Notes: generated from the letters alone by a model not told the origin. A stretch of DNA of 64,000 bases from Phaeosaccion multiseriatum (GCA_965112735.1 OZ218955.1:1674001-1738000); one strand, 5' to 3'. Shown: positions 1-62,110, numbered from the stretch's first letter. Numbers and translations: made by a program.

Positions 1-3000
1 CTCCTCCTCCTCCTCCTCCCACTCCGCCTCCACCCTCCCCTTTCCCCCCTCCCCCTCCTCCTCCGCCCCCCCCCCCTCTGCCCTGCCAGGACGAAGACGG
101 ACCTCCTTCCGCATAGAGTCCGATCTTGGCCTTGAATGACCACGAGCGCTGCACGTCAGGCCGAGGCGTGGTGAGGTAATGGTCGCCGCCGTCGGCAGGA
201 GGGCCCAGACCGCACGCCAACACATCCGCGGCAGAGAAGTCATCGGCCAACAGGCAGATTTGCTGAAGCTCGCGTACCTTCTCCTCCTCCTGCTGGCGAC
301 GCTGGCCCTGCTGAATCCCCAACTGCTGCTGGTGCTGGCCGGGCCATGGCTGCGAAAGGTAGAGCGCTGGGGCGTGCGTGATGGTGGGCCTGCAGGACCG
401 AGAGGGCCCCTCCTCTTTCTCCTTCTTCTTCTCCTCCTCCTCCTCCTCCTCCTCCTCCTCCTCCTTCTCTCGTTTCTCCTTCCCCTCCTCCTCCTCCTCC
501 TTCTCCTCCTTCTGCTCCTGCTGCGGAGAATCCTCGCCCCTTCTGCTTGGCGGTGCCTGGGAGGAGTCATCCTTGCGCGGCGACCCCCCTGTGCACTCCT
601 CAGCAGGCAGGTGGCCCACTGTTGCTGCGCCTTCGAGACCCCCACCCTCCTCTGGTGGTTGCTTCTCTCCTCCGTCGGCTGTTGTAGGTGGTGCTAGATG
701 TGCATCCGTTGCGATTCGCTCCTGTCTGAGCGGAGTCACCTCATCAGCATCCAAACTTCCGCCGCTCTTTTCTACGCCCAAGCTGGCCAAGCTGGGAGGG
801 CCTGCTACGGTATCACCAACTCCTCCTCCTCCCTCTGCGGTTCCGGTGCCGCCAGAGGCTGGTTCGGGGGTCTCCCCATCCACACTCTCCACGCGACGTC
901 GCTTGGCAGGGCTTTGGCCGTCTCCGCTCTCTTCTTCATCCTCCTCACCACTGAGTGCTAAAGAGGCCCCAGCAGGAGAACAAGAGACACCAGCGGGTAC
1001 TGTGGCGACGTCATCTGGTGCCTTGTCATCCACCCCAGCTGCAGACTCGCCCACCTCCATCTCCTCCTCGTCTCCTCTTCCATCAACTGCCATCCCCTCC
1101 TCCCTTGTCTTCTTCTCGTCATCTCCGAACAGTGCATCCATATCGTCGTCGTCGTCATCGTCCTCGGCCCCCTTTGCCTCTTCCGAAACGTCAACCGCCT
1201 TGCGCAAACGCAAACATCGCTTCCGTTTGCCAGCCCCAGCCTTCCCCTTGGCGCCCCCCTCGGCCTTCTCTCCTCGTCCCTCCCCCATGCCCCCCTCCTC
1301 GCCTTCTCCTCTTGATCCCCCTCCCCCTCCCCCTGCCCCTGCCCTGCCCTTCCCATGGATCACAAGCTCTGGAAACGCAACCTCGCCTCCCAACATGCTC
1401 TCCTCCACCTCCTCCTCCTCCTCATCCTGCTCCTCGTCCCCAGAAGAATCGCTCGCCGCAAACACCCTGGGCGCTGCCGAGACAGAGACCGCAAAGGCTG
1501 GGACCGGACGGCTGCTCCTCCCTCGTAGCCTTGGCCGTCCTCGGCGTCGAGCCAGACCCAGCCCCTGGCCCCCCACGGGACGAAAGGGTGGGCTTTTAAG
1601 AGTCACGAGGGGCATGTAGTTGAAAAAGACGGCGCTCTGACGGCTGGCGAGCGTGGCATCGCTGTACAGCACAGGCAGTGGGCAAGATCCGCGAGGAGGA
1701 GCTGCTGCTGCTGCTGCTGCCGCCGCTGCTGCTGTAGCACCAACTGCTGCTGCTGCCGCGGGGCAGCGTTCTCCAACAGCCACCGTCACTGCCAGCATGC
1801 CCCTCAGACATGTGCTGCTTCCACGCACCTCGCACTTGCCCCCCTTCTCCGCCGCCGCTGCTGTAGGGGAGAAAGAAGAGAAGGGGGGAAGCATGACCTC
1901 TAGCTCGGTGTCTGAGAGAATCCGAACGTCGTCGCCAGTCAGCCACAAGCCCTGTCCCACGCCCACGCCATGCCCCAGTTGCACAGAGATGGGAGCAGCA
2001 GGAACAGGGGCCAAGGGGCCGCTGGGAGGGGCGCGAACAAAGCAGCGACCGAGTTTCTCTCCTTCGTCTCCATCTCCAGTCGCTGCTGTAGCTGAATCAC
2101 CACTTGCTGCTGCTGCTTCTTCTGCTTCTTCTGCTGCTGCTGTAGGCGGTGGAGGTGGTTGAGAAAGATGCCCAGCTCGGAGAAAGTTCCTCCCTCGAAT
2201 GATGACAGGAAACGTCGCTAAGGAATCTCCCTCCAGTCTGAGGGCGGGCGAGTGAAATAAGTTGGACAACATGAGATATCGATCGGACTGTATCGGTGAG
2301 CATCGTTCACGCTTTAACACAAGGCACCGCACACACTGCACTTTGTCTGCCCTCCCTCCGTTTCTCTTTTCTCACTCCCTCCTCATCTTCAAGTTTCAGT
2401 TTCAGTTCCAGTTTTTAAAGGCCTCATCATACATACATCATACGTAACATGCACACCTCCGCGTACCTTCGGTTGGGCGTGATGCTCTCCACCACCGGTC
2501 TGAGGCAGTCCAATGGGTCGCCACACTGGCCTCTCTCTTCTCCTCGCACGCCTCTTCGTATGCCTCCTCCAGCCGCCCCCCCCATCATGCCCTTGCCGGC
2601 ATGGCTGCGAACGCCGTTGCTCAGCTCCTCCTCCTGATTGATACTGCTGCTGCTGCACCTGCCCCTCCTCTGGACGACCTTCGGTAGCACCGCATCGAAT
2701 GCCACGCACGCCTCGGCCCCCAGCTCGTAGCCCCCCTCCTTGGTAGGGGCTGGCTCGAAGGAGAAGGGTGTGGAAGAGGGCACGCCCGCCTCCTGCCCCT
2801 GCCCTTGCTCCTCTTCCGCCCGTCGCCGTGAAGAAGAAGAAGGCGTGCTAGGGCCTTCTCTACCCTGGCCTTTGCCTTGGGTAGCTTGGTGGGCAGGAGC
2901 GAGGGCTTGCAGAGCCATGATGCACTTCCGTGTGTCCGCGAGGTGTACCTGTAAAGTAACAACCCGGATGGCAATGGATGGGGGGACAGCACAGTGACAG

Positions 3001-60406: not shown

Positions 60407-62110
60407 ATGTCCCCCGTGCATAGCAATGGCAGGAAGGAGGGAGTGGAGGGAGAGCCTGCGGACCTGTTGCATCAGCAGGGCAAAAAGAGGAAGAGGAAGA
60501 GGGCAGATATGAATTGCATGGGCGCTTCTGAAGTTGGGATAAACGGAGAAAAGAAGCAGGAGAAGCATCTAAAGCGCAAGAAGAATATGGAGAAGAAAAA
60601 GAAAAAGAAGAAGAGGGCAGATGCGGATGAGGGGAAAGGGCCAAGCGATGTAAGAGCAATCGAGACGGGGGCGTCTGAAGTACGGGTATGTGAACAAGAG
60701 AAGAAGCCTCAGGAGGGGGGGATTTCTAAGCGTAAGAAGAAAGAGAAGAAGACTAATGGCCCACCAGCAGCAGGAAAAGGAGGAGGAGGAGGAGGAGGAG
60801 GAGGAGGAGGAGGAGGAGGAGGAGGTGGAGAGGTGTCAGCCACTGCTGCCGAGGGAGCTAAGCGTGGTAAAAACAGTGGCACACGGACGAAGGATCGCCG
60901 CCACCCCTTCGAAGTCGACTACTGCGATCACTTTGAGACGCCTCTCCAAGCCTACCAGGACATAGAGCCCATCCTGAGCTTACTCGCCAAGCGGCTGGGC
61001 AAGACCAAGGCGAACCTCCGCATATGGGACCCCTTCTACTGCGAGGGACGGGTGGTCACTCTGCTGAAGCAGTGCGGCTTCCACACTGTACGCCACACCA
61101 ACGAAGACTTCTACGCTCTGGTGAAGGACGGCGCCGAACCCCCCCACGACGTCATCGTGACGAACCCACCCTACAGCGCCGATCACAAGCAGCGCTGTCT
61201 CAGCTACCTGGTGTCTTCAGGTGATTAGGGCCATCTTCGCTTGCCTGCAGCATGCTGTGTTTGTTCCTGGACGGCTTCTTCTTTCTCTTGACTCGATTTC
61301 CTTCCACCATGTGCCGGCTCAACCCCGATGCGCCATGCTATCGCAGCAGTCACCCACCTTTCTTGCGACACTTCGGTACATACTGACAGACCATCTTGTC
61401 CCTCTCCTCTCCTCTCGCTGGTGTGACCCCCACCGCCCCATCCATCCCAGGCAAGCCCTGGCTGCTGCTGATACCGAACTACGTGGCCACGAAGGACTAC
61501 TACAAGGAGACTGTCCTGCAGAAGTTGGTGATACAGCAGCAGCAGCAGCAGCAGCAGCAGCAGCAGCAGCAGCAGCGGGAGGGGAAGGAGGTGAAGGGCG
61601 GCGGAAAGGGGCGGGGGGTCGCTTACCAAGAGCCCTTCTACGTGGTGCCCGAGGTTAAGTACGAGTTTGACCATCCGGAGGGTACCGGGCACACGACTTC
61701 GCCCTTTTTCGGCATCTGGTACTGCCACGCCGGGCCTTGGACAGACAACATCTTCGACAGCACGCCTCGGAAGGTGTGTGTGTGTGTGTGTGTGTGTGTG
61801 TGTGTGTGATTTGTGTCGGAATCTAGTGGTGGAGTGGGCAAACACGTCATATTTGTGAAGCCACGTTGCGTGCTTCTGAACAACGCCACTCTCACCCCAC
61901 ACGCATTGTCATTGTCCATCTCGCTTTACGCTTCCCCTCCCCTCCCCCTCACCCCGCACACACCTACACGAGCAGAGCGGATCCACTGCCCCCCGCCTAG
62001 TCAGATCTGTAGCGGCTCTGGCAGCCCAGGCGTTGGTGCCCACAGCCAAGAGGGCTAATCCCCGGCAGAGGAAAGCCGCCAGAAAGAGAGCCATGAGGGG
62101 CCGGGCGTGA
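60407..62110 (+). CDS. SAM-dependent amino-methyltransferase (NPPY motif; resembles phage/large-virus N6-adenine MTases) with Lys-rich N-terminus, 3 exons
   Basis: Exons 60407-61220, 61451-61773, 61976-62110. 'DHFETP', motif-I-like 'IWDPFYCEG', 'NEDFY', motif IV 'DVIVTNPPYS', 'KPWLLLIP'. Basic NLS-like tracts at both ends. Confidence 0.75.

Follow-up and report, generated by a model that had tools for sequence, protein, structure and literature searches.

A short motif is dispersed through a stretch of 64,000 nucleotides of the Phaeosaccion multiseriatum genome (GCA_965112735.1 OZ218955.1:1674001-1738000), which is called the window below, and it is found there nearly always as a 12-nt, four-codon interruption of CAG/CTG repeat tracts. 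The same 16-nt sequence recurs at 27 unrelated loci, so a copying process is required for its spread, and it is copied and conserved as nucleotide sequence and not as a peptide. We tentatively favour the explanation that the interruption is copied from tract to tract by repair in which the repeats serve as homology. All counts given here refer to this one 64-kb window.

Motif family in the window

The window had been read before by a model from the sequence alone (the sequence-only reading), which listed 16 exact copies of the 10-mer GTTGGTGATA/TATCACCAAC on both strands. All 16 were recovered at the positions listed. The expected count was 0.01 by dinucleotide shuffles and 0.03-0.5 by Markov models of order 1-5, which were trained on the window itself with the motif copies included, and the excess over background that had been claimed therefore holds within the window (16 observed against at most 0.5 expected). 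Every position was also scored against the 16-mer GCAGTTGGTGATACAG, and 5, 15, 8 and 3 sites were found with 0, 1, 2 and 3 mismatches, while 4, 5 and 6 mismatches gave 10, 66 and 386 sites. This distribution is bimodal and marks out a discrete family of 31 copies at up to 3 mismatches, to which a more diverged array unit at 15756 is added, giving 32 copies at 27 loci or about one copy per 2 kb. The variants that had been listed with one or two mismatches all belong to the family by the 16-mer scoring, including that at 2095, which has 3 mismatches.

Roughly half of the family copies carry point substitutions, which are scattered over the entire core. No truncated or half copies were found in the window, each near-match being of full length with point substitutions. 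Among the dispersed non-simple 12-mers of the window no other comes near the motif in number; the next families occupy 3-4 loci, and the remaining top k-mers stem from a single tandem array at 53.3-54.1 kb.

Systematic base-calling errors occur in simple repeats on some platforms, and an artefact of assembly, base calling or polishing in the CAG repeats was considered on this ground. It is very improbable, as point substitutions that differ between copies are present in half of them, the copies at 811 and 56761 are without or almost without a CAG flank, and there are tandem forms of 15-, 21- and 31-nt period. Nor does any copy in a long open reading frame (ORF) lie in the frame that would produce a stop; this check is partly circular.

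Association with CAG tracts

The consensus of the family is (GCA)n-GTT GGT GAT ACA-(GCA)n, with the unit GCA-GTTGGTGATA-CAG. All 31 aligned copies have G-3 and A-1, the copy at 2095, with GCA upstream, fits as well, and the GCA/CAG periodicity extends for 3-4 units on either side of the motif; the earlier remark that the copies are nearly always flanked by CAG/CTG repeats is borne out by these two features. The phase of the repeat is kept, so that, compared with a pure tract, the unit amounts to an interruption of four codons (12 nt). Its orientation relative to the CAG strand is identical in 32 of 32 copies, and both the fixed orientation and the kept phase are automatic if the flanks belong to the copied piece. 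The flanks are symmetric, with on average 2.0 perfect and 3.5 imperfect units upstream and 2.0 and 3.3 downstream.

About one third of the CAG/CTG tracts of at least 4 units hold a copy (13 of 42). The spacing of the loci is indistinguishable from a random assignment to CAG tracts (p = 0.2-0.5), and it is clustered when compared with uniform placement. Among tracts in the Ser frame none of 7 has the motif against 13 of 34 others, a difference that is in the expected direction, not significant and partly circular. A single unit is present at 23 of the 27 loci, and the other four have 2-4 tandem units with periods of 15 nt (56872-56902), 21 nt (15711-15792), 31 nt (47114-47160) and, loosely, roughly 48 nt (36797/36845). 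The 31-nt period is not a multiple of three, and its locus has stops in all six frames.

The sequence common to the loci consists of the unit and CAG repeats only. No second conserved flank motif was detected by k-mer enrichment, the 150-nt flanks having no shared k-mers, and self-BLAST of the window gave no longer repeat around the copies. The longer parent element that the sequence-only reading had proposed to search for was not found in the window, and the candidate that the motif is a piece of a longer repeat or transposon was rejected. When sub-families were tested by shared flank variants, the nominal p was 0.003 with a star-like pattern and without clear sub-families; this value is not relied on, because the shuffle ignores the decay of flanks in each copy.

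Possible origins by insertion

Three kinds of insertion may be weighed against this anatomy. The first supposes a CAG-targeting retroelement, of which the motif would be either a set of copies with extreme 5' truncation or a very small derivative that is not autonomous; its RNA, ending in ...(GCA)n-GTTGGTGATA-(CAG)n, would prime reverse transcription on a nicked CAG tract via its CAG tail, and the cDNA would rejoin once the internal GCA run was copied. Elements without long terminal repeats (non-LTR elements) that target microsatellites exist (PMC4640811). In favour of such an origin, the orientation of the motif is fixed relative to the CAG strand, and some copies adjoin a long pure CAG run on its 5' side, as if the run were their tail (61524, 39881, 7247, 8511). 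Still, the CAG runs before and after the motif are of equal mean length, without the asymmetry that a tail would give; at none of the 27 loci is there shared sequence past the CAG run on the upstream side, and variable truncation is not seen. No reverse-transcriptase ORF was present among the 20 window ORFs scanned with Pfam, nor a longer repeat in the self-comparison, and we regard the retroelement as unlikely.

The second supposes footprints or miniature copies of a CAG-targeting cut-and-paste DNA transposon, with the 9-nt remnant TTGGTGATA between the two copies of a 3-bp target duplication. CAG-TTGGTGATA-CAG can be parsed in this way, the CAG on both sides being inseparable from the repeat tract itself, and microsatellite-targeting DNA transposons are known, as in the case of MuTAnT (PMC4486113). 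The parsing is highly improbable as an origin, however: no inverted termini could be read in TTGGTGATA or GCAGTTGGTGATACAG, and TTGGTGATA is without inverted-repeat symmetry, as TTGG... would require ...CCAA at the other end. A full-length element with such ends was not found in the window, the orientation is fixed in all 32 copies, and it would be unusual for 27 sites to bear the same footprint.

The third supposes a fixed internal RNA template, by which a telomerase-like or other polymerase would extend broken 3' ends in ...CAGCA by one unit, GTTGGTGATACAGCA, and the new CAGCA end would re-anneal across the tract, much as interstitial telomeric repeats are inserted where DNA has broken. In its favour are the discrete unit of fixed length, the core 10-mer that is identical in 16 copies, the lack of a parent element in the window, the star-like pattern of the copies, whose sub-families are not clear, and the two units exactly 15 nt apart at 56872-56902, which look as if they came from two rounds of addition. 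Against this, the tandem periods of 21 and 31 nt misfit a 15-nt template, no Rfam families or tRNAs were found in the window, and we know of no such RNA or enzyme. The telomere-like TAGGG repeats at 5505-5708 have a different sequence and suggest a conventional telomere motif. The fixed template is improbable on balance.

Conservation at the nucleotide level

In each of four long ORFs several copies occur together, in differing frames or orientations. The ORF at 2-2371(-) has the readings AVGAT, VGDT, SGDS and QLGIQ; that at 7063-9615(-) has AVGDT and ALCDT in the sense direction and VVPPT and AVPAT from copies of the opposite orientation; that at 23284-24309(+) has AVGDT and QLVVQ; and an ATPase ORF at 56636-57997(-) has QLVIQ, AVGDTAVGDT, QLVVQ and AVGDT. 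The ATPase ORF aligns with P5 ATPase on either side of the motif segments, so the motif is really translated there; these segments fall in an insert and a variable loop that is filled otherwise in the homologue.

In 1,194 codons from the conserved genes of the window the G+C content of third codon positions (GC3) is 0.80, and GTT, GGT, GAT and ACA make up 8%, 13%, 19% and 9% of their codon families in the same genes. The A-frame copies always have exactly GTT-GGT-GAT-ACA, for which the joint probability is about 2e-4 per copy if the peptide were the selected thing. No frame is open or coding-like at the copies at 47114-47160, 31465, 39878 and 51808, and no Pfam family lies over the motif regions in the 20 window ORFs scanned. 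The identity is placed at the nucleotide level because of these mixed frames and orientations in single ORFs, the invariant rare codons and the copies in DNA where all frames are stopped.

The sequence-only reading had held that the motif is read in different frames and strands, that it is conserved as nucleotides and that it writes recurrent peptides into proteins. The first two points are confirmed even within single ORFs, where the rare codons stay constant, and the third agrees with the presence of the motif in variable loops of otherwise unrelated proteins. A restriction to one frame of one protein family, which it had named as fatal to its view, was not observed, there being several frames and orientations per ORF. 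Its statement that copies lie in introns and between genes stands in part: the copies at 47117 and 47148 are non-coding, but the intron label at 15777 is doubtful. The units of the array at 15711-15792 differ mainly in the third letters of the codons for AVGDT (GGT/GGA/GGG/GGA; GAT/GAC), a pattern suggestive of a small exon.

The third-position variation of this array is also what selection on a recurrent peptide AVGDTA in a low-complexity protein family would produce. As a general explanation such selection is refuted and we give it practically no credence, since within single ORFs this DNA is also read in the frame of QLVIQ or, in antisense, as VxPT, copies occur where all frames stop, and the rare codons are always used.

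Selection might act instead on a putative cis-acting site for a DNA- or RNA-binding factor. The core 10-mer is exact in 16 copies while the flanks decay, and within the motif there is what we take to be a resemblance to a MYB-type core (CAGTTG / ACCAAC) and to GATA. A binding site is decidedly unlikely all the same, for the copies are found in coding loops as well as in DNA that is probably non-coding, a single ORF can hold both orientations, the copies have no positional relation to gene starts, and about half of them are substituted, across the whole core. Point mutation cannot yield a 16-nt exact sequence 27 times, so that copying would still be required.

Proposed copying between tracts by repair

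Templated repair is the simplest process for a motif with fixed orientation and phase, symmetric flanks, no parent, no truncation series or termini, and loci that share only CAG, and copying based on homology fits this anatomy best. CAG tracts are known to break and recombine readily. In a pure CAG tract a break or a stalled fork would arise, which would then invade, or switch template to, a CAG tract elsewhere; the interruption of the donor would be copied through, and the CAG repeats beyond it would serve for the return. Ectopic gene conversion, synthesis-dependent strand annealing (SDSA) and microhomology-mediated template switching are the candidate routes. In a coding tract each such event would add AVGDT, QLVIQ or antisense VSPT to the protein. 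Microsatellites are known to be stabilised by interruptions (see also PMC4102424), and interrupted tracts, being stabler, would donate more often than receive, so that the interruption would accumulate. The family, its discreteness, its tie to CAG and its nucleotide-level identity are observed in the window, whereas we infer the copying route and the donor bias from the anatomy only.

Taken one step further, the motif may possibly be a self-propagating microsatellite interruption, that is, a 12-nt selfish sequence without genes, ends or an enzyme, which host repair copies from stable interrupted tracts; our confidence in this extension is slightly lower than in the repair process itself. Copying between CAG tracts had already been suggested from the sequence, and this part of the suggestion agrees with the need for copying, the tie to the tracts and the random spread among them, but the hairpin that accompanied it did not survive.

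Several observations weigh against copying by repair. The single window showed neither a donor-recipient pair nor a conversion tract nor an empty allele, and genome-wide behaviour is beyond its reach. The present flanking tracts are short (about 10-30 nt) and give poor homology for classical ectopic recombination, and four or five copies (811, 54633, 56761, 61524) are almost without CAG on one side, for which one-sided homology or later decay of the tract is needed. Robust sub-families with linked flank variants were not found, the excess at p = 0.003 being confounded by uneven flank decay, and the GGT sub-variant could be recurrent mutation. The model also gives no reason for the spread of this interruption alone. 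The probability that is left over after the models discussed here belongs to mechanisms outside the list.

Structure and database searches

A hairpin of the CAG type with the motif as its loop, as drawn in the sequence-only reading, was rejected: eight copies folded as DNA gave z from -1.7 to +0.6, with no energy excess, and the structures were unlike one another. A 21-mer containing the motif was absent from viral contigs and had one chance match in metagenome contigs and one in bacterial genome contigs, with no CAG tract at either. No occurrence of the motif sequence was found in the literature searched. The contigs of the three nearest retrievable organisms bearing ATP-citrate lyase (ACL), a brown alga included, have no motif and almost no CAG tracts.

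Comparison with known systems

We rate the motif family as a dispersed, microsatellite-associated short repeat. None of the known systems compared here matches it as a whole, and each shares one or two of its properties. Microsatellite-targeting elements (rice Micron, Medicago MuTAnT and the restriction-like-endonuclease non-LTR retrotransposons) are likewise dispersed in one microsatellite class at many unrelated loci, but they are hundreds to thousands of bases long, end in termini that are inverted or otherwise defined, come with target duplications or a 3' tail and have a parent that is autonomous, whereas the motif has 12-16 nt and none of these. The trinucleotide interruptions (CAA in HTT, CAT in ATXN1, AGG in FMR1) are also non-repeat inserts in a CAG-type tract with the frame kept, and by analogy with them the motif should lower slippage and fragility. 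They are single variant units made by point mutation at one locus, while here the same 12-nt, four-codon interruption is present at 27 loci.

The iterated oligomers of bacteria, namely the cyanobacterial highly iterated palindrome (HIP1), the Neisseria DNA uptake sequence (DUS) and the Haemophilus uptake signal sequence (USS), resemble the motif as exact 8-12-mers found every few kb, and an over-represented exact oligomer in non-coding DNA and in several frames of coding DNA is indeed what the window has. A further shared property is maintenance by a molecular drive and not through the peptide that is encoded. These oligomers are prokaryotic, without microsatellite context and with known or suspected drivers (uptake bias, methylation), whereas the motif is bound to CAG and belongs to a eukaryote with spliceosomal introns in its ACL gene, so that neither independence of context nor a prokaryotic driver applies.

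Interstitial telomeric repeats, made by telomerase at double-strand breaks, share the short fixed templated unit and have no parent element, but no telomere repeat with the unit of the motif is known. Minisatellite variant repeats and microsatellite families (e.g. the lepidopteran microsatellite-associated elements) are comparable to the 2-4 head-to-tail units at four loci, and in microsatellite families with similar flanks the similarity between loci does not come from gene homology either. Such families have a long flanking element, while the similarity seen here is internal to the tract with a single unit at 23 of 27 loci, and the head-to-tail arrays that define minisatellites are seen at only 4 of 27.

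Copies of the motif and other features of the window

The copies are listed in Table 1 with their form and their context.

Table 1. Copies of the motif in the window, with coordinates, strand, form of the copy and surrounding sequence or reading.
Position	Strand	Form of the copy	Context
311..326	-	variant GCAGTTGGgGATtCAG	QQLGIQQ in ORF 2-2371(-)
808..823	-	exact 10-mer, decayed flanks GGA..CCG	GVGDTV in ORF 2-2371(-)
1732..1747	-	variant GTTGGTGcTA	in ORF 2-2371(-)
2092..2107	-	variant GCAaGTGGTGATtCAG, 3 mismatches	AASGDSA in ORF 2-2371(-)
6129..6144	-	variant GTTGGTGgTA (GGT sub-variant)	
6455..6470	+	exact 16-mer	between (GCA)7 and (CAG)3
7244..7259	+	variant GTTGcTGgTA	antisense to ORF 7063-9615(-), AVPATA
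7352..7367	+	variant GTTGGTGgTA	antisense to ORF 7063-9615(-), VVPPTA
7692..7707	-	exact 10-mer	sense in ORF 7063-9615(-)
8508..8523	-	variant cTTtGTGATA	sense in ORF 7063-9615(-), ALCDTA
15711..15792	-	four head-to-tail 21-nt units, first exact, others diverged (GGT/GGA/GGG/GGA, GAT/GAC/GAT/GGC)	possibly small exon
18166..18181	-	exact 10-mer	within long CAG tract; QQLVIRE in 191-aa open frame
22579..22594	+	exact 16-mer	between (GCA)10 and (CAG)6; QQQLVIQQQ in Zf_WRKY19-repeat gene ORF 21836-23347(+)
23542..23557	+	exact 10-mer	AAVGDTT in ORF 23284-24309(+)
23721..23736	+	variant GTTGGTagTA	QQLVVQE in ORF 23284-24309(+), frame differs from copy at 23545
31465..31480	+	variant GTTGGTGAaA	imperfect (GCA/ACA)8 tract before; all frames with stops nearby
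36797..36812	+	variant GTTGaTGATA	
36845..36860	+	exact 10-mer, then 1-nt insertion (GATAaCAG)	insertion shifts phase of downstream tract
39878..39893	-	variant GTTGGTGATg	ahead of (CAG)6; without long sense ORF
47114..47160	-	two exact copies, 31-nt tandem duplication	six frames stopped; about 1 kb past ACL stop codon
51808..51823	-	variant GgTGGTGATA	probably non-coding
54630..54645	-	exact 10-mer	upstream flank not CAG
56758..56773	-	exact 10-mer	almost without CAG flank; SAVGDTP in P5-ATPase ORF 56636-57997(-)
56822..56837	-	variant GTTGGTGgTA	QQQLVVQ in P5-ATPase ORF, second frame
56872..56902	-	two exact copies spaced 15 nt	AAVGDTAVGDTAE in P5-ATPase ORF
57425..57440	-	exact 16-mer	QQQQLVIQQ in P5-ATPase ORF, in insert that homologue lacks
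61521..61536	+	exact 10-mer	5' edge of pure (CAG)14, upstream GAA not GCA; KLVIQQQ frame

The DNA of the window is eukaryotic and very rich in microsatellites; its G+C content is 57-61%, and purines and pyrimidines are distributed with strong asymmetry between the strands. Its ACL gene is of the fused (animal) type and lies at 42025-46066 (+), with exons at about 42025-43242, 43473-44441 and 44801-46066. The closest match that could be retrieved is a fragment from the brown alga Choristocarpus (73% identity), followed by an oomycete (65%). The two GT-AG introns of the gene start with GTAAGT and GTGAGC, are 230-360 nt long and are CT-rich. A mini-intron or splice relic (GT..ACAG) as the source of the motif was rejected by comparison with these introns, and excision of 13 nt would also fail to restore the CAG tract. 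A 37-nt tandem repeat of 2.5 copies with 96% matches is found just upstream of the ACL gene (41065-41158).

The ATPase ORF mentioned above is the N-terminal exon of a P5-type cation ATPase at 56636-57997 (-), and a search of 1.8 billion representatives gave as its best homologue a protein of Diphylleia with only 34% identity. Together, the ACL and ATPase matches point to an unsampled lineage that is possibly stramenopile-like. Beside five motif copies this exon also holds large inserts of low complexity (poly-E/V, poly-P, poly-S). Two genes with Zf_WRKY19 Cys-rich repeats, which we take to be EsV-1-7-like, form a divergent pair at 18424-20613 (-) and 21836-23347 (+); they are 71% identical in the repeats only, and there is inverted nucleotide similarity between 19973-20235 and 21504-22160. 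A duplicated paralogous gene as carrier of the motif was rejected, the two being alike only in the Cys-rich repeats and not at the motif sites. Further ORFs include one with a HUN domain and one that is SMP-30/gluconolactonase-like, and a search with the latter gave no match.

Other repeats were also seen. The array at 53286-54137 has about 27 head-to-tail copies, 96-98% alike, of a 31-32 nt unit containing CCACCACCACTACTCATACATGTATATGCCCCC, and it lies within a stop-free minus-strand stretch of 569 aa that is probably no real gene. A second, smaller dispersed motif, CATCCACTGCCATCC, is exact at four loci (40115-40129, 48006-48020(-), 48101-48242 and 53223-53237(-)) and has 1-mismatch copies at 1081 and 2966, with 23 matches at up to 3 mismatches against 2.8 expected. 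It is found in C/CT-rich low-complexity DNA, is expanded to a 21-nt minisatellite at 48.1 kb, and on the other strand gives MAVDG repeats. This hints that short unique motifs within simple repeats are perhaps more general in this genome. The 12-mer CTGTCCTGACAC is present at three loci (40723, 48080 and 50316), two of them near CATCCACTGCCATCC copies, so both may be one degenerate element. At 21363-21386 two 12-nt units GTTGGTGGTACG adjoin (CAG)8 in an orientation opposite to that of the CAG-bound family, and they are either an unrelated GGT-rich repeat or the sole inverted copy.

Very long microsatellites are located at 3089-3442, 37956-38361, 19072-19244, 5505-5708, 39566-39750 and 40396-40573, and they comprise (ATCC) x ~89, (TCCC) x ~101, perfect (TCC) x 57, telomere-like (TAGGG) x ~40, which is that at 5505-5708, and (CT) x ~90. 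Alongside them the pyrimidine/purine strand asymmetry spans tens of kb.

Significance

The motif is relevant to gene finders, repeat maskers and orthology pipelines that are applied to this genome. At about one copy per 2 kb it would, if it is a self-propagating interruption, be among the most abundant dispersed sequences of the genome. If the copying is real and proceeds via the repeats, then dispersed microsatellites would not be independent loci and would exchange sequence genome-wide. An interruption that stabilises repeats would also insert fixed tetrapeptides into many proteins, by a homing without homing endonuclease, and low-complexity protein regions would gain recurrent peptides without selection on the peptide. 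The family would offer a natural system for the study of ectopic repair at trinucleotide repeats and of the origin of stabilising interruptions, and a 12-nt sequence without genes would be selfish merely by making the host tract less breakable.

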